A stretch of 64,000 bases of DNA from Trichosphaerium sp. ATCC 40318. Lineage: Eukaryota > Protista > Tubulinea. The position numbers were made by a program, and so were the translations under genes. Shown here in pieces: positions 8,608 to 43,815 of the stretch. The first letter of the stretch is position 1, and each line of letters begins with the position of its first letter. The stretch is from contig JALMLS010000204.1 in assembly GCA_038496445.1 (NCBI GenBank), forward strand, positions 1-64,000, read 5' to 3'. The notes under the pieces are model-generated. The model ran no database searches, had not been told where the DNA came from, and saw nothing but the letters and a program-made list of their open reading frames with translations.

Positions 8608-8623
8608 AAGAATAAGAGAATTA
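8608..8623. repeat. Left target-site duplication of the LINE (AAGAATAAGAGAATTA)
   Basis: Identical 16-mer at 16775-16790. Confidence 0.95.
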
Positions 8624-8729
8624 GTTAGTTAGTTTATTGTTATTTTGTTAAGGCAGGTCATTGAACAAAGCGCCCTAAAGTCGCATTCTCTTCCCCTGAA
8701 GATTGTTCGATTCTGCCGTGTTAGATTTA

Positions 8730-11700
8730 TTATTTACCTCTATCAATTGGAAAAATTTCAGTAATTGGTATATTACCGTATCTGATATTCCAGCGTATGT
8801 AATCTGTGCTTACGTATTGTTTAAGGTGTTTCTTTATTTTTATTGTTCTATTGCACCTTACGCGGTATTTTTCGTATAGTAATCTCGTATATAATGTGTT
8901 GAGTTTATTCGCTAATTTTGTGGCAGATGCAGGTTCGATTTCGAAGTTTGTTTCTAGTTCTTTTACAAATTTTTTAGTTACGTATCCTTGTGCTCCACGG
9001 TATAGGTTCGGGTCGTTAGCTTCTTCTTCAGTAGTGAATATCCATTTCACTTTGAATGGTTTTGGGTTATTAATTTCTTTTTTTCCTATTATCGCTAGTT
9101 CTAATCTTTCGTTTGACGGTTCCTCCTTTCGGAACCATTTACATTTACAGAAGGAGTTCTTTGGGTTCACAATATTGTTGTATTTCTTTTTATTGCTTAC
9201 TTTATCCTCTACGTTGTTTTTTAGGTGTTCTTGCGTTATTCGGTTTGCGTGATGTTGCAGTCTTTCAAAGAAGTATGTTGAGTGACATAAGACAAAGTGC
9301 GTAAAGTTTTCTTCTTTTTCTAATTTCTTACGGGATTGGCATATAGAACAAAAAGGATTAGGGTACATTTTCATGTATCTCGCTTGAGTGATTGGGAATT
9401 TTATATGTTTACCTTTTTTATGCATGAAATTATTTAATGGAAGGCCGTTGCTTCTTACTTTTAACAGCCATGACGATATCGTTCTGTCAATATGTAGTTT
9501 ATTTTCTGTAACGCTGGCTTTGAAATTGATATTTTTTCTCGTTCTACAGTGTTTGTTAGAGTTCTCTTCGAGTTTGTCGAAAAAATATTCTGTAAAGCTA
9601 TTTGTTACATGTTCTCTCAATCCTGATTCAAGTATGGATCCATTGAACGTTATATTCCAGTTTGGTAGACCTTTTGGGATTCCTATAACTTTATTGTTAC
9701 TTCTTTCTTTATCCGCTAGTTTGTCTGCTTTAAAATTCATTAGTAAGAGTTTTTGCGTGATGATGGTACCGTGTTTACTTTCCAGTTGTTTGATTCGTTT
9801 AACGATATTAGGTTTATTAGCTTTTATTTTATCTTCTAGGGTGTGACTAGGCACCCATAAGAATCTAATTGGTTCCGATCTTTTATTAATTTCTCTGTGG
9901 ATTCTGTTAATGGTATGGTAATGCGGTTTGTTTATCTTTTTCTTTTTTGGCCAGTTATTCCAGTTGATGATAGATTCTATTGCTGATGTACAGTCTGAGG
10001 CAATCATTATTTTGGTGTCTAATGGAGATATTTTTAGTACTACTTCTATTGCTTCTAATTCCGCGTTAATTGACGTTTTGTTAAATAAAACTGGGAGGCT
10101 AATGTTGATATTATTTGGGGCATATATGCCTATACCTGCTTCGCCTTTATTTGATAGAGAGCCATCTGTAGCTATTGTGATATATTCATTGATGATGAGA
10201 GCGTTATTGTTGAATTCGGTTTTATCTCTTCTTGTCATTTTTCTTTCTATCTTTGATAATTCGTAATTGTGTTGTAATCTTAGGCCTGTTTTTTTTAGTA
10301 ATTCTGAGGCAATCGTTACCGAGTCTGAGTTTATATCAATATCTAATTCTTCATTTGTATTACATGAGGTACAGTACGTGGGTGAAGAGAAACATCTTCT
10401 TTCCGTGATTTTCCGTAGTGCTATATTGTCTGAATTTAGGCATTTTGAGATTAGGTTATTAACGTAACCCACTGTCTGATTTACGAAGAGGGATTTTAGG
10501 TTAGCGCCTGTAAGGGGTATTAGGAATCTTGCATTGAGAAGGTTATGACGTAGTTTGGCTGAGCCTTTAATTATACCTATTGCGTTGTTGTCCATTTCGT
10601 TAAGTGCTTCATTTCCCAAAAAGATCGAGGTGCTTACAAAATCTACAGCTGGATTAATTACTGTATTGATTAGTTTAACTTTGTTGTGTACCGATAGTTT
10701 ATTAGACCAAAGCGTCTTAAGTCTTTTTCTGTGAGTAGCAACTGTTTTATTTATCTGTTTTGTAAAGTCAAGGTTTGCATTCGTTAAAATACCTAGGTCT
10801 TTGTAATTTGTTTTTTCGTCTATGACCGGTATGATTTTGTCTTTCCAGATTAATGATGGTATGTTTTTCAAGTTTACGTACTTGTTGTATGTTAGGGCTG
10901 ATTTGGAGCAGTTTATTTCCATTCCGAAAAAAGAGCACCATTTTTTTAGTATTTTGAACATTTTTTCCATGTCTTGTTTAGATTTGGCCATAATTTTCAG
11001 GTCATCCGCATATGCTAGCACTGCAATTATGATATCTGACCACATATACCCCAGGTTAGATTGTTCTAATTCTTTAAGTAAGACGTTAATGAAAAGGGAG
11101 AAAAGGATAGGGCTTATTACGTCACCTTGTCTAACGCCTTTGTTTATGGGAAATTTCTTTGATCCTACTGGGATATTTAACTCTGTACTCACATCTTTCA
11201 GTAGGGACATAATTATGTCGCACCATTCTTTGGATAGTCCTTGTATTTTCAGTGCTGCCAGAAGGGCCCAGAATTGTACCGAATCGTAAGCCTTCTTGAA
11301 ATCTATGTAAAGGATAAATAAAGGTTTTTTTTTTAAATTTGCGTCTTCTAGTATTTGGTGATACATTTTGTGAGCCATGTGGATCGATCTATTGTTATAG
11401 AACCCAAATTGGAAATCTGATATTACCTTGTTCCTCCTTAGGATACTTGTTAGTCTCTTCGTTATAAGTGTGCTGTAGATTTTGTACATCGAGTTTAAGA
11501 GGCATATTGGGCGGTATTGTGAGACGTCATCCTTTTTCTGTTTGTTTTTTTCAAGAAGGATCATCGTTGATTCTTTCCATTGCCCTGGTATTTTCTTTGT
11601 TTTGAGGCATATGTTGCATAAGTTCTTTATTATTTTTATATTGTCGTATGAAAGTTCTTTATATATTTCGGCTCCTAGGCCAGTCGTACCTGGTGCTTTG

Positions 11701-14700
11701 AAAGACTTCATCTGTTTTATAATTGTGGTTATTTCTAGCGTATTTATACTACATATTTCCTGATTGTATATCGTGTTGAAACTAGCTTTAAAGTTAGGAG
11801 GTCTTGAGAGTGTAGGTATTGGACATTTTTTACTTTGGTCTTTGTATGGGTGATCGAAGTTGCTTTCAAATAGTTTAGACCAAAAGCTATAAAACTCATT
11901 GAAGATGGATTCGTCATCGTTCATTATTATTGGAATACCGTCGATTGAGCTTATAACACTTTCTGTGAAAGAGTTAGTTCCTTTTTTGTCGTTGAATTGT
12001 TTTAAATATTTGTATTTCTTGTATACCGTACGGTTCGATAGTTCTGAAAGTTCATCTATTGATCTGTCTACGCAGATTTTCTTCATGTTGTTTGTGAGGG
12101 CTTTGATCCAATGATTTAGTAAATTCGTGTTCTTTTTTAATATGATTTTTTGTACCGAGTTTTTTTCTTCAATTCTTGGGATCCTTAGGAGTTTGTTTTC
12201 TTCAGCTTTGTCCATCCATTTATTTACTTTGTTTATATTTCTATTGATAGGTCTATTAGGTTCCTCATTAGTTATTTGGTTATTGATCTTTCTACACATA
12301 TTTTTTAGGCTTTTTAATCTTTTATGTTCTGAGTGTTCCACGTACGGTTTTCTGTTGTGATTGTTGTTTCTGATTCCTACTTCTCTAGCTGTGTATTTAA
12401 ATAATTCTTTTGTAAAATTCGTTACTGCTCTGTCGACATAAATGTCACTTAGGTACTCGTCTTCTCCTGCATTTTTAATTAAATTCATAGTGTAGTCAGA
12501 GGGAGAGAAGAGAGGGATTTTGAGCTTTAGCTTTGGACTTCTCGTGTTTAGTTTCTTCTTTGTTTTTCTTGTCTTGGGTGTGTTCTTTACTTTGCTACAT
12601 GGGATGAAACGTGTTGTCAATATAATTGGTTTATGATCTGATGCGCACTCGTCTAATATTGTAATTAGTGATGATGTTTTTTTGGGATTTGTGGTTAACG
12701 CGAAGTCGATTCTTTCATGGAGTGTACCTTTACCATATTTCTTTATTTTTGTATTTAGTTTGAAGGTAAGACTCTTAGTACAGTTCTTTAAGTGATCTAT
12801 TGGGTCTGTAAGGCCGTTATGTAACTTAAATGTATTGAGAATGTTTTCGTACTTTGTTTTGATTTCTATGAATTTTTCGTTGAACCAAAATTGTTTATCT
12901 TTGTCGTATTGGGCCATATTCCAGTCCCCTATGAGTATTACGTTATTGATATCCTTATTTTTGTTTGTCATTTTTTTTGTGAACTTACTGATGATTTCGA
13001 GTTGTTCGATTTTGTTGTGGATTTTATAAGCGCATAGATACACATTGTATATTAGCGTTAGTTTGTTGTCTTTGTTTTTGATGGTGATGGCTTGGAAGAA
13101 ATTATTTGGATGACTAATTATTTTTGTAACTTTCATTAGCTCCTTGTGAACGAGGATTGCGAGGCCGCCTTTTGCTCTTGCCGATTTCGTTGTTAGTTTG
13201 TTTTTTAGGTCTATTTTTTCTGCATCAGACCAAGACATGTTATCTATGAGATCAGAGTTAGTCTTCATGTACGTGTTATTTATTTCATTTCTATTTGGGA
13301 CGTTTGCGAAGAATTTGAAGTTTATGAAGTGTTTTTTGAGTACTTTGTTGAAGGCGTCGCTCTTTATTTGTTCCGTGGATCTATGTATTTCTTGAAGGCA
13401 TATGATATCTAGGTTATTATTTTCGATTAGTGCTTTCACATTGCTTGATTTAGTTTCTATCCTACCTTTAATGTTCCATGAGGCAATGTTTATCTTGTTT
13501 TTGTATGATTTCGTAGTTTTTTGTTTGCCTCCTCCTCTTAGACGCCTTATAATTGTTATTTTGTTATTGATAAGCGTACTTACGCGTGACGATGTAGTAA
13601 CGTACTTGAAACAGGAGAGAAAGAAAAAGTCGTCAATCTTGGCATCAGAGTTAGGTTTCATTATGTTATTTAGGAGCGTACTTATCTTTATATCATAGTG
13701 ACATGTGTAGAGGGTGGAAAAGAAGCCGTTGATTTGGATGGTCTTTGGTTTTCTAAATTTGAGGACTTGACAAATATTGTGAACTATACGTGGTATGATT
13801 AATCGATTAATACAAATGTTAGAGGAAAAACCATGTTTATTAGGTATCTTAACATGTACGAAAAGGGGCTTTCGGTTGAACTCTAAAAATAATTTGGGTC
13901 TTAATGCTGTCGTAGCGCGTCGTGCATCGTATCTAGAATCTTTTATCGCCAAAACGAAGAAGTCTTTGTTTCTTGTTAATCTTGAGAGAGAACATTCCTT
14001 TGAACTGTCTTTCAACAGTCTTCTTAGCAGATACACTACCGAAACTGACAATATAATGCGATGTCTTGTTACCTTTTGCTGTGCAATCATAGCAAATACT
14101 GCGGGCGTATACCTAATATCCTTAGAAGCTATGTAAGTTGTTTTTGTTACCTTAATTTCAGCGAGTGCAATTAAAATATCTTTAGGAGTGCCCATCCATG
14201 TCTTACCAAGATACAAGGAGAGATTCTTGTCAAATTTCATTCTACAAGGAATAAAGCGACCGAACCCATTATCTTCTGCTAGAGCAAGGTGATATCCAGC
14301 GTTCTTGAGGACTGTAACTACTGAGCTCTTGTTTTGGTTTGGAGCTAAGATAATATCGGCGATAAATGACGTCCTTGATATTCCGTGGTTCGAATACGTT
14401 TGAGAGTCTACTATTACCGCTGGTTTTGGAGCATTGGGTTTCCATTTGGTCAAGATGTCGTTAACATTGAAGGGCTCGGTGTTACTCCATAGTGGAGCTA
14501 AGATAATATCGGCGATAAATGACGTCCTTGATATTCCGTGGTTCGAATACGTTTGAGAGTCTACTATTACCGCTGGTTTTGGAGCATTGGGTTTCCATTT
14601 GGTCAAGATGTCGTTAACATTGAAGGGCTCGGTGTTACTCCATAGCGTCAGTATACGGCAGTTCATGAAATCTTCCATATAGCGAAGGAAATCAATCAAC

Positions 14701-16703
14701 GTTTTGGTTCTGTCGATATCGAAGAAGGTATGAGCACTGGCAGGAATCAAGTTCTTTCTCAGCGTATCTTTGAAGAATTTGACTTCTTCTAAGTACGCTT
14801 CAGGAACAGTACCAATTTTCAAACCAAAAACGAATGCGCAATGACCATGTGGAAGGGGAACTGATGCGTAACCAACATATCCTATAGCATGATGAGTATT
14901 TGTTAACATTAAATAAAACTGTTTTTTTAGATTTTTTGTATTTTCGTAATTACTGCAATTGTTTACATTGTATTTTACAGTGCGAGAGGTATTGATATTT
15001 TTGAAGGTGTTGAAACGGGCATAGTTTAGTTCGTATTTTTTGAAAACAAGGGAGGATTTAGTTTTTAGTTTAGAGAAAATGTTCGTTTTAGATTTGTTTA
15101 ATACTACATTTTCAGAAAAGGAAAGAGAGTGAAGAGATAATGTCTTCTTTTGTTTAAAAGAGGAGAAAATATAAAAGCGAATCTTAAAAATAGGGTTTAC
15201 GTTACCTTTAGTTAGCCAGTTTCTGAATTTAGTAGGTAACTCTATCATCTTATTAACATCGATATCGGGAGATATTGGACCGCCTGGGTAGAAAACACCG
15301 AAAGCCGCTGAGAAGTGGATGAGCTGTGTCCATTCCACCAAGCGACCATAGCGCGTCGAAAGATCAACCTTATCTGGGTCATGTTGTTCGTTTGCAAAGA
15401 TACCATCCTCGTCCTGAAGAGAGATTAGGATTTTTTGGAGTTTGAGAAAAAGAAAAGAAGGTGATACAATACTTACTTCCTCGTCCTTGTTGGATGCATT
15501 AACAAAAGAGAGGAGAAGGTTTATATTCTCTTGTTCTTCTCTCTTTGTAATGGAATCCAGGACTTGTTTTTCGAGGGTTGCTTTGAAGGGACTATCTTGG
15601 AGTGATCCTAGTCTTACCATAGCTTCTTCACGGGTCATATTGGCGAAACCATTGAGACGATTGTTGTTGTTATTTGCAGACATGTTGTGTATGTGTTGAT
15701 GAGGCGACAAAAAGGATAAGGACTGAAAATAAATTATTTTATTAATTTTATTATATGTCCGTCGGGAGTTTATGGGGGAGTGTGGTTTTCCATCACTTGT
15801 GTTATATTTGTTTCTGTTGTATCTTTTTTTGAGATTTGGCTTTGCCGTAAAATGTTTACTTCTACTTCTTTTATTCTTGATTTCTGAACATTCGTTGGAG
15901 TAATTTGTGTTGTTATTTGGGGTGTTGTTTAGGGACATTATGAGTTCTGGTAAGATTTGAAAAGCTATTATGCGAAAATATAAAGAGACGAGAGGGAGAA
16001 TTTTAAAGTTTACTGTACTTACCTTTTTGTAATGTACGTTGTTACGCGTTTTGCAATTGTGTGGGATTTTTGTATTTTCTGTAAGAAGGAGGAGCAAGAT
16101 AAATGTAATACTTGGTAACGTTACGGTTGCCAGGATTAAAGGTTTGGGTAGATTTGTTTTTATTACGTTTTTTACAACATTTTTTACTAATCTTGAGGGG
16201 AAAGGGGTATATGTGAGGTTGTGGTAACTAAGCGTTTTGTGTTTTGTGTGTTTTCTGTAGATGAATTCCGTGTTTATCTTAATTTGTCTATTCTCTTGAT
16301 GGTAATGAGGTTGATTTATACGTACTGGCACGGTGTCTGTTACTAGTCTTTTGTGGTTTGGGTTGTATCTTTCGAAAGATTTTGTGTTTGGGTTGCATAT
16401 GTCTATCGACGATAGGTACAAACCTAACACTAGAATTCTCATTATGATTATTGATATTTTCTTAAGGTTAATTCTCGATTTTTGGGGAGAAGCTCGAACT
16501 CGCTTCTTCGCTACACCGCGGCACCTTATGGTATAAGCCTTGGCCGGTGTAATTGCACGATATTCCCTCGATTTTTTTTTGTTTTTTGTTTTTTGTTTTT
16601 GTTTACGGGGAACTTGTTCCCCGACCAGCACGTTAGCCGACGGTTGCAAAACTTTTTGGCCATCGACCAACGTACCGGTTCCTTTTGACGTTGTCGATGG
16701 CAT
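8730..16703 (-). CDS. LINE polyprotein: leader + ORF1-like region + ubiquitin-like domain + AP endonuclease + reverse transcriptase + RNase H + C-terminal Zn finger
   Basis: APE motifs IASWNIKG, DIICLQE, YNVY, LIGDWN, RIDF, SDHKPI (about 13490-12620). RT motifs KAPG, YRPICLLN, QFGF, IDFKKAYDSV, GVRQGDVISP, YADD (11012-11001), YKDLG. RNase H motifs ATDGS, AELEAI, SDC, WVPSH, ADKLA. CSIC...HFVLC near the C-terminus. Confidence 0.95.
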   Translation of the reverse strand: MPSTTSKGTGTLVDGQKVLQPSANVLVGEQVPRKQKQKTKNKKKSREYRAITPAKAYTIRCRGVAKKRVRASPQKSRINLKKISIIIMRILVLGLYLSSIDICNPNTKSFERYNPNHKRLVTDTVPVRINQPHYHQENRQIKINTEFIYRKHTKHKTLSYHNLTYTPFPSRLVKNVVKNVIKTNLPKPLILATVTLPSITFILLLLLTENTKIPHNCKTRNNVHYKKVSTVNFKILPLVSLYFRIIAFQILPELIMSLNNTPNNNTNYSNECSEIKNKRSRSKHFTAKPNLKKRYNRNKYNTSDGKPHSPINSRRTYNKINKIIYFQSLSFLSPHQHIHNMSANNNNNRLNGFANMTREEAMVRLGSLQDSPFKATLEKQVLDSITKREEQENINLLLSFVNASNKDEEVSIVSPSFLFLKLQKILISLQDEDGIFANEQHDPDKVDLSTRYGRLVEWTQLIHFSAAFGVFYPGGPISPDIDVNKMIELPTKFRNWLTKGNVNPIFKIRFYIFSSFKQKKTLSLHSLSFSENVVLNKSKTNIFSKLKTKSSLVFKKYELNYARFNTFKNINTSRTVKYNVNNCSNYENTKNLKKQFYLMLTNTHHAIGYVGYASVPLPHGHCAFVFGLKIGTVPEAYLEEVKFFKDTLRKNLIPASAHTFFDIDRTKTLIDFLRYMEDFMNCRILTLWSNTEPFNVNDILTKWKPNAPKPAVIVDSQTYSNHGISRTSFIADIILAPLWSNTEPFNVNDILTKWKPNAPKPAVIVDSQTYSNHGISRTSFIADIILAPNQNKSSVVTVLKNAGYHLALAEDNGFGRFIPCRMKFDKNLSLYLGKTWMGTPKDILIALAEIKVTKTTYIASKDIRYTPAVFAMIAQQKVTRHRIILSVSVVYLLRRLLKDSSKECSLSRLTRNKDFFVLAIKDSRYDARRATTALRPKLFLEFNRKPLFVHVKIPNKHGFSSNICINRLIIPRIVHNICQVLKFRKPKTIQINGFFSTLYTCHYDIKISTLLNNIMKPNSDAKIDDFFFLSCFKYVTTSSRVSTLINNKITIIRRLRGGGKQKTTKSYKNKINIASWNIKGRIETKSSNVKALIENNNLDIICLQEIHRSTEQIKSDAFNKVLKKHFINFKFFANVPNRNEINNTYMKTNSDLIDNMSWSDAEKIDLKNKLTTKSARAKGGLAILVHKELMKVTKIISHPNNFFQAITIKNKDNKLTLIYNVYLCAYKIHNKIEQLEIISKFTKKMTNKNKDINNVILIGDWNMAQYDKDKQFWFNEKFIEIKTKYENILNTFKLHNGLTDPIDHLKNCTKSLTFKLNTKIKKYGKGTLHERIDFALTTNPKKTSSLITILDECASDHKPIILTTRFIPCSKVKNTPKTRKTKKKLNTRSPKLKLKIPLFSPSDYTMNLIKNAGEDEYLSDIYVDRAVTNFTKELFKYTAREVGIRNNNHNRKPYVEHSEHKRLKSLKNMCRKINNQITNEEPNRPINRNINKVNKWMDKAEENKLLRIPRIEEKNSVQKIILKKNTNLLNHWIKALTNNMKKICVDRSIDELSELSNRTVYKKYKYLKQFNDKKGTNSFTESVISSIDGIPIIMNDDESIFNEFYSFWSKLFESNFDHPYKDQSKKCPIPTLSRPPNFKASFNTIYNQEICSINTLEITTIIKQMKSFKAPGTTGLGAEIYKELSYDNIKIIKNLCNICLKTKKIPGQWKESTMILLEKNKQKKDDVSQYRPICLLNSMYKIYSTLITKRLTSILRRNKVISDFQFGFYNNRSIHMAHKMYHQILEDANLKKKPLFILYIDFKKAYDSVQFWALLAALKIQGLSKEWCDIIMSLLKDVSTELNIPVGSKKFPINKGVRQGDVISPILFSLFINVLLKELEQSNLGYMWSDIIIAVLAYADDLKIMAKSKQDMEKMFKILKKWCSFFGMEINCSKSALTYNKYVNLKNIPSLIWKDKIIPVIDEKTNYKDLGILTNANLDFTKQINKTVATHRKRLKTLWSNKLSVHNKVKLINTVINPAVDFVSTSIFLGNEALNEMDNNAIGIIKGSAKLRHNLLNARFLIPLTGANLKSLFVNQTVGYVNNLISKCLNSDNIALRKITERRCFSSPTYCTSCNTNEELDIDINSDSVTIASELLKKTGLRLQHNYELSKIERKMTRRDKTEFNNNALIINEYITIATDGSLSNKGEAGIGIYAPNNINISLPVLFNKTSINAELEAIEVVLKISPLDTKIMIASDCTSAIESIINWNNWPKKKKINKPHYHTINRIHREINKRSEPIRFLWVPSHTLEDKIKANKPNIVKRIKQLESKHGTIITQKLLLMNFKADKLADKERSNNKVIGIPKGLPNWNITFNGSILESGLREHVTNSFTEYFFDKLEENSNKHCRTRKNINFKASVTENKLHIDRTISSWLLKVRSNGLPLNNFMHKKGKHIKFPITQARYMKMYPNPFCSICQSRKKLEKEENFTHFVLCHSTYFFERLQHHANRITQEHLKNNVEDKVSNKKKYNNIVNPKNSFCKCKWFRKEEPSNERLELAIIGKKEINNPKPFKVKWIFTTEEEANDPNLYRGAQGYVTKKFVKELETNFEIEPASATKLANKLNTLYTRLLYEKYRVRCNRTIKIKKHLKQYVSTDYIRWNIRYGNIPITEIFPIDRGK
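13933..15683 (-). CDS. Predicted spliced ORF1 protein (about 441 aa; exons 15683-15477, 15413-15206, 14881-14151, 14112-13933) ending in an RRM-like domain
   Basis: Three GT-AG introns matching host intron style. The last exon is in a different frame from the long ORF and reads VYARSICYDCTAKGNKTSHYIVSFGSVSAKKTVERQFKGMFSLKINKKQRLLRFGDKRF*. The start codon is a best guess. Confidence 0.6.
14340..14645. repeat. Perfect 153-bp tandem duplication (2 copies, 51 aa each) inside the LINE
   Basis: 14340-14492 equals 14493-14645; the protein shows LWSNTEPFNV...FIADIILAP twice. Confidence 0.95.
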
Positions 16704-16723
16704 AGATCTTGTTTTATTTAATT

Positions 16724-16774
16724 AGCGTCGTTGCCCAGGGTGAACTGCGTGGAAGTCGCTGGTGTTGTCACCCC
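16724..16774 (-). ncRNA. Minimal HDV-like self-cleaving ribozyme at the LINE 5' end
   Basis: GGGGUGA-CAACACC-AGCG-ACU-UCCACGC-AGU-UCACCCU-GG-GCAA-CGA-CGCU: 7-bp P1 with G1-U wobble, P2 AGCG/CGCU, P3 ACU/AGU, L3 UCCACGC, P1.1 CC/GG. G1 abuts the TSD. Confidence 0.8.
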
Positions 16775-16790
16775 AAGAATAAGAGAATTA
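16775..16790. repeat. Right target-site duplication of the LINE
   Basis: AAGAATAAGAGAATTA, identical to 8608-8623. Confidence 0.95.
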
Positions 16791-43032: not shown

Positions 43033-43815
43033 TAAGTTTTTAATTTTCGTTTAAAGTTATATCCCTTTAAAAAGCACTTGATTGTATCCAAAGATCTGGA
43101 GAAATACCAAATATTACGGAGGAAACGCGGGATAACAAGTCAGTTGAGACAAAAAATCCGCAAAAAAAAATCTCACAAAACCGGTGTACTGTGGTCTTTT
43201 TTGTACACACAAACCCAAGCGGGTTTATAAGGGCGCTGTAGTGCGCGCTTGAGTGTACTGAGGTTTTTTATTGCTAGTTCGATGTTGAAACAAAGTAGGA
43301 AAAGCGAACAACTCCTAATTCAACATTAGGTCATTCCAATACAAGTGGGTGGTTGAACAGAGAGCTGTGTATAATATTGCCATTGACAATTGTTTTTTAC
43401 TATCCTTTACTGACCCTTTGTCGCAGTAATTTGTGAATGTGGCTTTCGTTGTCCGCGGTGTTTTGCAATCACTTGTGATACGCCCGTGTTTCATTGGACT
43501 TATCTTAAACAAGCTATATTATACTATCCTCCTGTTGTGCTGTGCTACAAGATAAGAAAAAAAAAACAAAGGTCCAATATACTGGGCTGACAAAAGCACT
43601 TCTTTGTATTTGATTTCATCCACGCGTCAAATCACTGCAACCTTAGACATCTTGGGACTCAAAGTTCGTTGGTTACCTTGGAATCCCTGTTCGTTTAAAC
43701 AACACGCAACACATTCGTCAATATTCAGGGTAGTTCTTGAACGAACACGCATTTTCAGGCAAGTTCCTCTTCAGGCAAAAAGGACCAAAAAAGGCAGTTG
43801 CATTACAATTCTAAC

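Follow-up and report, generated by a model that had tools for sequence, protein, structure and literature searches.

The window analysed here is a stretch of 64,000 nt from the protist Trichosphaerium sp. ATCC 40318 (assembly GCA_038496445.1, contig JALMLS010000204.1). It contains a long interspersed nuclear element (LINE), here called element A, in which an intron may decide which of two element proteins is made. Element A and its relatives in the same genome suggest, at about even odds, a protist LINE lineage in which retention or removal of an intron of 38–56 nt chooses between a polyprotein of the first and second open reading frames (ORF1–ORF2) and ORF1 by itself, and in which a captured ubiquitin recruits host proteases, such capture having occurred at least twice, independently, among LINEs.

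The mechanism as a whole, an intron switch combined with ubiquitin-like release in a ribozyme-headed LINE, is given a probability of roughly 0.55. The element would be transcribed, possibly within a longer transcript, and a ribozyme resembling that of hepatitis delta virus (HDV) would cut at its first base to form the 5′ end. Ribosomes would start at the first AUG, in the P4 loop of the ribozyme, and read a non-conserved, stop-free leader. Where the third intron is spliced the frame would shift, ORF1 would gain a conserved C-terminal exon and then stop, and the spliced RNA would encode only the ORF1 protein (ORF1p). Where it is not spliced, the same frame would continue through the introns, a junk linker and a ubiquitin-like module into ORF2, and a host ubiquitin or ubiquitin-like protease would cut after a diglycine (GG) to leave a clean ORF2 protein (ORF2p) of 1599 aa. 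As only the intron-containing RNA would encode ORF2p, cis-preferential copying would propagate the introns. The switch would replace the two-ORF layout still present in two sister families, C440 and C462. The steps that we infer from sequence are splicing, cleavage by the ribozyme and cutting by a deubiquitinase.

Element A, its relatives and the introns of ORF1

Element A is a real, active LINE of low copy number. It is complete, occupies 16774–8623 of the window on the minus strand, has no long terminal repeats (LTRs), ends in a simple-repeat tail and is bounded by a perfect 15-nt target-site duplication (TSD; 16789–16775 and 8622–8608). The genome searched for copies and relatives comprised 70 Mb in 642 contigs. 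Within it, a second full-length copy, B, lies on contig C265 (G000:C265) between flanks unrelated to those of A and with a TSD of its own, AAAACTCCGAAA. B differs from A at one base and lacks a perfect, in-frame tandem duplication of 153 bp (51 codons) that A carries in ORF1 exon 3 (14340–14492 and 14493–14645). The near-identity of A and B at different loci indicates that the family moved very recently. At three loci the TSDs are 15, 12 and 12 nt long, each different in sequence.

The minus strand of A holds a single ATG-to-stop ORF of 2657 codons (16703–8730). Pfam places in it an apurinic/apyrimidinic-type endonuclease (APE; Exo_endo_phos, aa 1074–1357, E 3e-9), a reverse transcriptase (RT; RVT_1, aa 1723–1944, E 3e-37) and an RNase H (aa 2173–2288). 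The long protein had no exact match in public assemblies, and a search of sequencing runs listed no RNA run for the element.

Three relatives were found in the genome. C (contig C361) shares 67% DNA identity with A over ORF2 and 78% over the initial 338 nt; D (C99) and E (C80), a degraded cousin of D, share about 35% protein identity with A over the endonuclease region. C, D and E each have their own TSD, and a run of G stands at the start of each. A tree of 109 RT sequences groups A, C, D and E in a single clade (SH-aLRT, the Shimodaira–Hasegawa-like approximate likelihood-ratio test, 97). The sisters of this clade are the same-genome families C440 (L037) and C462 (L038), which have an ordinary layout with an ORF1 of 552–569 codons and an ORF2 of 1652–1656 codons in another frame, the two being separated by a 24-nt gap or overlapping by 4 nt. 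They are the natural outgroup for the origin of the intron switch. An exhaustive protein search returned 30717 proteins at E <=1e-10; those inspected were LINE-type APE-RT proteins, and the nearest, at 27–31% identity, had no clade name attached.

The features of element A are as follows, with the basis of each in brackets.

16775–16789, minus strand: 5′ TSD of 15 nt, AATTCTCTTATTCTT (identical 15-mer at 8608–8622)
16675–16774, minus strand: candidate HDV-like ribozyme, its G1 being the first base of the element (Rfam RF00094, 26.2 bits)
15684–16703, minus strand: leader of 340 codons, stop-free, in frame with ORF1 and ORF2, first AUG at 16703–16701 (stop counts)
15477–15683, minus strand: ORF1 exon 1, starting MSANNNN (conserved in C and D)
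15414–15476, minus strand: predicted intron 1, 63 nt, GTAAGT...CAG, a multiple of 3, stop-free (72 nt at the same site in C)
15206–15413, minus strand: ORF1 exon 2 (comparison with relatives)
14882–15205, minus strand: predicted intron 2, 324 nt, GTAACG...TAG, phase 1, a multiple of 3, stop-free (177 nt at the same site and phase in C)
14151–14881, minus strand: ORF1 exon 3, holding the copy-specific 153-bp duplication (comparison with B)
14113–14150, minus strand: predicted intron 3, the frame-switch intron, 38 nt, GTAACA...TAG, phase 0, length 2 mod 3 (homologues in C, D and E)
13933–14112, minus strand: last exon of ORF1 in the shifted frame, 59 codons and a TAG at 13935–13933 (conservation in A, C and D starts with the residue that follows the junction)
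13770–13932, minus strand: linker of the long frame, stop-free, poorly conserved (stop counts, D versus E)
13530–13769, minus strand: putative degenerate ubiquitin-like segment ending RRLRGG, with cleavage proposed after the GG (codons 13535–13530) (tail and position)
8730–13529, minus strand: ORF2 part, 1599 aa and stop (Pfam domains)
13484–12633, minus strand: APE (Pfam)
11537–10872, minus strand: RT (Pfam)
10187–9840, minus strand: RNase H (Pfam)
aa 2452 of the long ORF, minus strand: CCHC motif, beyond RNase H (sequence)
8623–8729, minus strand: 3′ untranslated region with an (ACTA)n-like tail at its end (sequence)
8608–8622, minus strand: 3′ TSD, AATTCTCTTATTCTT (perfect repeat of 16789–16775)

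The introns of ORF1 recur in the relatives. C has introns at all three sites of A and in the same phases (72, 177 and 47 nt), but no alignment of their sequences with the introns of A is possible. D and E have the switch intron only, at 56 nt each. At 38 nt in A, 47 in C and 56 in D and E, the switch intron keeps the same site and phase 0, and in all four elements its length is 2 mod 3. All eight intron segments of A, C, D and E start with GTA, end with AG, are T-rich and are G-poor.

Removal of the switch intron opens a shifted frame in which 59–63 residues are conserved from the junction onward and are followed by a stop; the long frame reads the same stretch (13933–14112) as linker. D and E differ at 18 sites in this exon, distributed 2/2/14 over the codon positions of the shifted frame (P 1.4e-4), and their amino acid sequences agree at 59/63 residues when read in the shifted frame and at 47/62 in the long one. 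The third-position bias and the higher identity identify the shifted frame as the translated and selected one, and the substitution pattern indicates that the last exon is under purifying selection in that frame. The predicted spliced ORF1 proteins of B, C and D (390, 391 and 421 aa) align end to end, and removal of all three introns from A gives a predicted product of 441 aa.

An earlier reading of the window, made from its letters and open reading frames (the sequence-only reading), had proposed much of this structure. The TSD-bounded element, the stop-free 2657-codon ORF with APE, RT and RNase H, the GT...AG segments at exactly the junctions 15477/15413, 15206/14881 and 14151/14112, and the alternative-frame exon ending ORF1 were all recovered. 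Retention of introns in relatives, which it expected, holds for the switch intron, present in all four elements; introns 1 and 2 are shared by A and C and are absent from D and E. The ORF1p that it predicted, of about 441 aa and 50 kDa, does follow in length from splicing of A, but this length is inflated by the duplication found in A and not in B.

An RNA-binding, 'RRM-like' ORF1p was likewise part of that reading and stays unconfirmed. No match was found to ORF1 exon 3 in a word-index search, Pfam returned nothing on the four ORF1 exons, and BLASTP against ORF1 of C440 and C462 gave no significant match. When the last exon was searched as a profile against the PDB, the only matches were titin and YoeB, both judged to be chance.

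Two further observations concern D and E. The sense-strand 3′ end of this family is a run of about 25 T, neither poly(A) nor a short repeat (L034, G000:C99 near 73650–73680; L035, G000:C80 at about 43350–43385). D and E share 94% identity over their first 1027 bp and 77–78% over the remainder (L033, L036), a step which suggests exchange of a 5′ module between lineages.

The 5′ end and the GG-terminated segment

The Rfam model HDV_ribozyme (RF00094) aligns over its full length at 16776–16675 and sets its cleavage-site G on the first base of element A. Such a fold can be traced manually on A and C, with a P1 of 7 bp closed by G.U, a P3 with CC in L3, CUGGGCAAC, a P4 that has the first AUG in its variable loop, a proposed catalytic C in J4/2 ahead of AAA or GAAA, and a short P2. 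A ribozyme in A and C is likely. The 5′ HDV-like fold of the sequence-only reading is thus present as a candidate, but its score of 26.2 bits lies far below the Rfam gathering score of 50.

The sharp 5′ end could instead be that of an internal promoter with a fixed start, the HDV likeness being a weak chance match or a decayed relic. This explanation draws on the low score and on sub-threshold hits of the same model in bacterial control genomes. It also draws on D and E: their 5′ ends are precise, and they open with a similar hairpin, yet the GGGCAAC required for P1.1 is missing and an Rfam search found no ribozyme in them. It is nevertheless unlikely: in three insertions the model sets its cleavage site exactly on the first base that the TSD defines, A and C agree at 46 of the first 48 bases of the core but at 71% of positions in the remaining alignable leader, and every HDV element can be drawn. 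The genome also has a second HDV-like family, which keeps P1 by compensatory changes; a mixed alignment of it with the A family is out of structural register.

This second family scores 28–29 bits, above the candidate in the window, and has a P1 of GGGGUAC/GUACCCU and a clean 6-bp P2. Its loci (L039–L042) are C133:10432–10513, C225:81201–81282 and, as an inverted pair, C636:559–640 and 1713–1794. A sequence upstream of D that resembles the P3–P1 strand of A was considered as part of a ribozyme and rejected, the TSD of D marking it as target DNA. Shortly after the ribozyme region, a perfect hairpin is followed by GUAAACAAAAA both in A (window 16590–16625, minus strand) and in D (about 200 nt in, L033). 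The stems differ yet pair (A, GGGGAAC...GUUCCCC; D, GCGGGAC...GUCCCCGC), a pattern that points to a conserved RNA element.

Between the linker and the endonuclease lies a segment of about 75 residues that ends in GG in every lineage (RRLRGG in A, FKLKGG in C, EPIIGG in D and E). The GG sits 11–20 aa upstream of the APE start in A, C, D and E; the C-terminal diglycine is present at the domain end and conserved in position. RLRGG at 13544–13530 leaves 1599 aa downstream, the length given for the ORF2 part in the sequence-only reading. Its expectation that relatives would share the GG motif and the splice signals also agrees with C, D and E, which have the GG, and with the GT...AG switch intron of all four elements.

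In D and E several weak, independent lines agree on a ubiquitin-like domain. The sole hit of the segment in a PDB sequence search is a ubiquitin variant; a protein atlas places it with ubiquitin families (0.93, 177 shared features); and pairwise hhalign pairs it with host ubiquitin across 55 columns (E 0.0018), the register holding up to the GG. An AlphaFold model (predicted local distance difference test, pLDDT, 67) has the order beta-beta-alpha-beta-beta. The top Foldseek hits of this model are all ubiquitin-like folds (E ~0.3), as are the top 50 of an exhaustive structural search (VIA; Z 4.3–5.4). Of the changes between D and E in the segment, 43/83 are at third positions (P 4e-4), the mark of purifying selection.

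In A the case is different. The ubiquitin-like domain ending RLRGG, as first described, stands in its tail and its position, but its fold is not recognisable. For A and C neither Pfam nor the atlas reports a ubiquitin-like fold and the AlphaFold pLDDT is 37; Pfam ubiquitin (PF00240) gives no hit in A, C, D or E; and hhalign failed to match the A/C profile of the segment to that of D/E. The RLRGG of A is identical to the tail of ubiquitin and aligns with LVLRLRGG of host ubiquitin over 8 residues only. A ubiquitin-like fold in A can be inferred from this tail and its position.

An unrelated LINE provides a second case. P0027 (JGI contig Ga0633754_008622, locus L056), a protein of 2588 aa on a metagenome contig of 7988 nt, contains a Pfam ubiquitin (E 1.3e-13) that ends LCGG about 40 aa before the APE, in a single frame with an ORF1-like region. 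It is the only one of the 150 nearest representatives with a Pfam-significant ubiquitin, and in the RT tree it branches elsewhere, next to a relative that lacks ubiquitin. Ubiquitin was therefore probably captured independently, twice in LINEs. A search for wider relatives with the ubiquitin-like and APE region (residues 1–500) found nothing at E 1e-5, and one around the ubiquitin–APE junction of P0027 found only P0027 itself and a polyubiquitin-like protein.

Release of ORF2p by cleavage after the GG is slightly favoured, because ubiquitin fusions generally behave in this way. Alternatively, the segment is no cleavage module: ORF2 would work within a giant fusion, or the segment would serve in binding the proteasome or a partner, with an incidental GG. 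Many integral ubiquitin-like domains are indeed never cleaved, the EPIIGG of D and E is not a canonical deubiquitinase site, and the fold is undetectable in A and C. Integral ubiquitin-like domains usually lack the GG, however, and here it stands at the exact domain end in all four elements and in the independent P0027. The leader and linker upstream, moreover, evolve as junk that is merely kept open, which is sensible only if they are removed. A role without cleavage is accordingly rather improbable.

Predicted splicing and the open frame of the unspliced RNA

In A and C a TAG closes the shifted frame at the last three bases of the switch intron, directly before the conserved residues. A ribosomal frameshift upstream therefore cannot reach these residues, and, judged from the sequences, splicing is the only explanation that suits A, C, D and E alike. 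Programmed frameshifting into the last exon, with the GT...AG segments as translated inserts, could make use of an A-rich run in the D/E segment that might be slippery (CAAAAAAC), but it is very improbable. Apart from the TAG, it leaves aside that eight of the eight segments have the form GTA...AG, rich in T and poor in G, that they differ in length and cannot be aligned between lineages, and that their signals match those of host introns. Host actin introns have the same signals, GTACGC...YAG (GTACGC...TTTAG) with CTTAC-like branch sites, and a size of about 50–125 nt as estimated from the gaps between matched actin exons. The introns of the element have the features of spliceosomal introns, namely GT...AG ends, a host-like 5′ site, a branch site or pyrimidine tract, and a host-like size. 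The frame-switch intron is very probably real.

The frame that runs through the unspliced RNA is open well beyond ORF1 and ORF2. Over the 1020 nt of the leader of A, the long frame contains no stop, whereas the other two frames contain 27 and 19, and shuffled sequences about 21 on average. Intron 2 of A has 0 against 11 and 8 (P ~0.0004). The 186 codons upstream of ORF1 in C have 0 against 18 and 17, and the leader of D (782 nt) has 0 against 16 and 18. Introns 1 and 2 are stop-free multiples of 3 in both A and C (4/4). The stop-free leaders and introns that the sequence-only reading expected in relatives are therefore present in those that have them. Although the sense strand is A-rich and T-poor, an accident of that composition in a decaying element has a negligible probability as the source of the open frame, being refuted by the composition-matched shuffles, by the stops in the other two frames, by the repetition of the pattern in three lineages and by the near-identity, hence youth, of the copies.

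The leader of C is interrupted by a nested pair of elements of about 1035 bp with terminal inverted repeats (TIRs); subtraction of 2066 bp and a 2-bp TSD restores a single frame from the first AUG. This TIR element, CAGGGCTGAAACTCAAC, has a 2-bp TSD, GA, and more than 40 copies at 96–100% identity. Besides the two nested copies in the C leader (L018, G000:C361:18013–20078, C positions 567–2632), it interrupts E, and a further copy adjoins the window (G000:C30:84188–85223). It looks like a very active non-autonomous DNA transposon.

The leader is not conserved as protein: changes between D and E fall 13/20/23 by codon position, with no third-position excess. The linker is 57% identical between D and E, and 5/5 indels in it are multiples of 3. 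Leader and linker appear to be merely kept open, the pattern expected of sequence that is translated and then discarded. The unspliced RNA is quite probably translated end to end. The first AUG is in frame in every lineage; AUGs in other frames also occur in the leader, so that translation is unlikely to depend only on scanning to the ORF1 AUG. Translation probably starts at the AUG at 16703, inside the ribozyme region, and not only at that of ORF1. With the leader open and in frame with ORF1, the spliced product need not be of about 50 kDa. The proposal that the spliced RNA makes ORF1p only and the unspliced RNA is read through agrees with the conserved switch intron, the selected exon and the open frame, except that the product may carry a leader extension.

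Several points weigh against the intron switch with ubiquitin-like release. If translation begins in the leader, spliced ORF1p would carry an unexplained junk extension of 340 aa. ORF1p has no detectable homologues or domains, so that its RNA-binding role is assumed. To these are added the sub-threshold ribozyme score, the missing P1.1 sequence of D and E, the undetectable fold in A and C, and an EPIIGG tail in D and E that is unlike the LRLRGG read by ubiquitin hydrolases.

Comparison with known systems

In R2 the frame is open toward the 5′ end. LINEs with 5′ HDV-like ribozymes are known, among them R2, L1Tc/ingi and others (PMC3774820, PMC4035085, PMC4908430). As in these, a self-cleaving fold at the first base of element A would free the element RNA from a longer transcript and set its 5′ end; as in R2, the open frame begins in or just after the ribozyme candidate. 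Element A differs in being a two-protein element in which an intron would make the choice between ORF1 and ORF2, and in the sub-threshold score of its ribozyme candidate.

Copia makes a spliced subgenomic RNA beside an unspliced genomic RNA. In copia and the retroviruses, as proposed for element A, the spliced RNA yields only structural protein, the unspliced RNA is both genome and polymerase mRNA, and the ratio would be set by splicing efficiency. Retroviruses face the problem of exporting unspliced RNA (PMC10309623). Element A is, by contrast, a non-LTR element without a protease, and removal of its intron (38–56 nt in the lineage) would create a stop by shifting the frame rather than by deleting pol.

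Cytopathic pestiviruses carry captured host ubiquitin before NS3, and cells contain fusions of ubiquitin with ribosomal proteins. There too, a GG-ended ubiquitin stands in frame before the released protein, host hydrolases cut, and no protease of the virus or fusion is needed. In element A the module would be stable and ancestral in a transposon lineage and highly diverged, and its cleavage is predicted. L1Tc uses a 2A peptide, which acts by ribosome skipping. Both are single-frame LINE polyproteins separated without an element-encoded protease, L1Tc by skipping and without an intron switch, element A putatively by a ubiquitin-like fusion. P0027 shares with element A a single frame with an ORF1-like region, a ubiquitin module ending in GG and putative in A, and APE, RT and RNase H; it differs in its canonical ubiquitin, in having no evident switch intron and in belonging to another RT clade.

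Human L1 RNA is spliced by the host, and the resulting spliced integrated retrotransposed elements (SpIREs) are dead copies, the splicing being harmful (PMC5860796). In element A, unlike L1, the splice sites are conserved and the predicted spliced product carries a selected exon. A full-text literature search, of incomplete coverage, found neither a ubiquitin domain in a LINE nor an ORF1/ORF2 switch operated by an intron; the sequence-only reading had put the combination forward as a candidate new system.

Two standing questions are what sets the ratio of ORF1p to ORF2p in LINEs and by what means a retroelement can keep introns. Known LINE solutions to the first are unconventional reinitiation, stop–start overlap, frameshifting and 2A peptides. 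If the proposed mechanism is true, the switch would be a further solution, resembling that of copia and the retroviruses and reached independently by a non-LTR element, and fusion to a ubiquitin-like module would be a form of protease-free processing so far known from pestiviruses and cellular ubiquitin fusions. Selection would keep non-coding stretches, the leader and introns, merely open. The family would be a natural test of cis-preference, because only the intron-containing RNA would encode the polymerase. The parts are small and well defined, so that each step is directly testable in a heterologous reporter.

Some distant metagenomic LINEs (P0006, P0018, P0044, P0063 and P0103) have a signal-peptide-like hydrophobic stretch and a small-residue motif directly before the endonuclease, in some of them in the same frame as, and preceded by, a long ORF1-like region. 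The hydrophobic stretch in these LINEs could be another release device that depends on a host protease.

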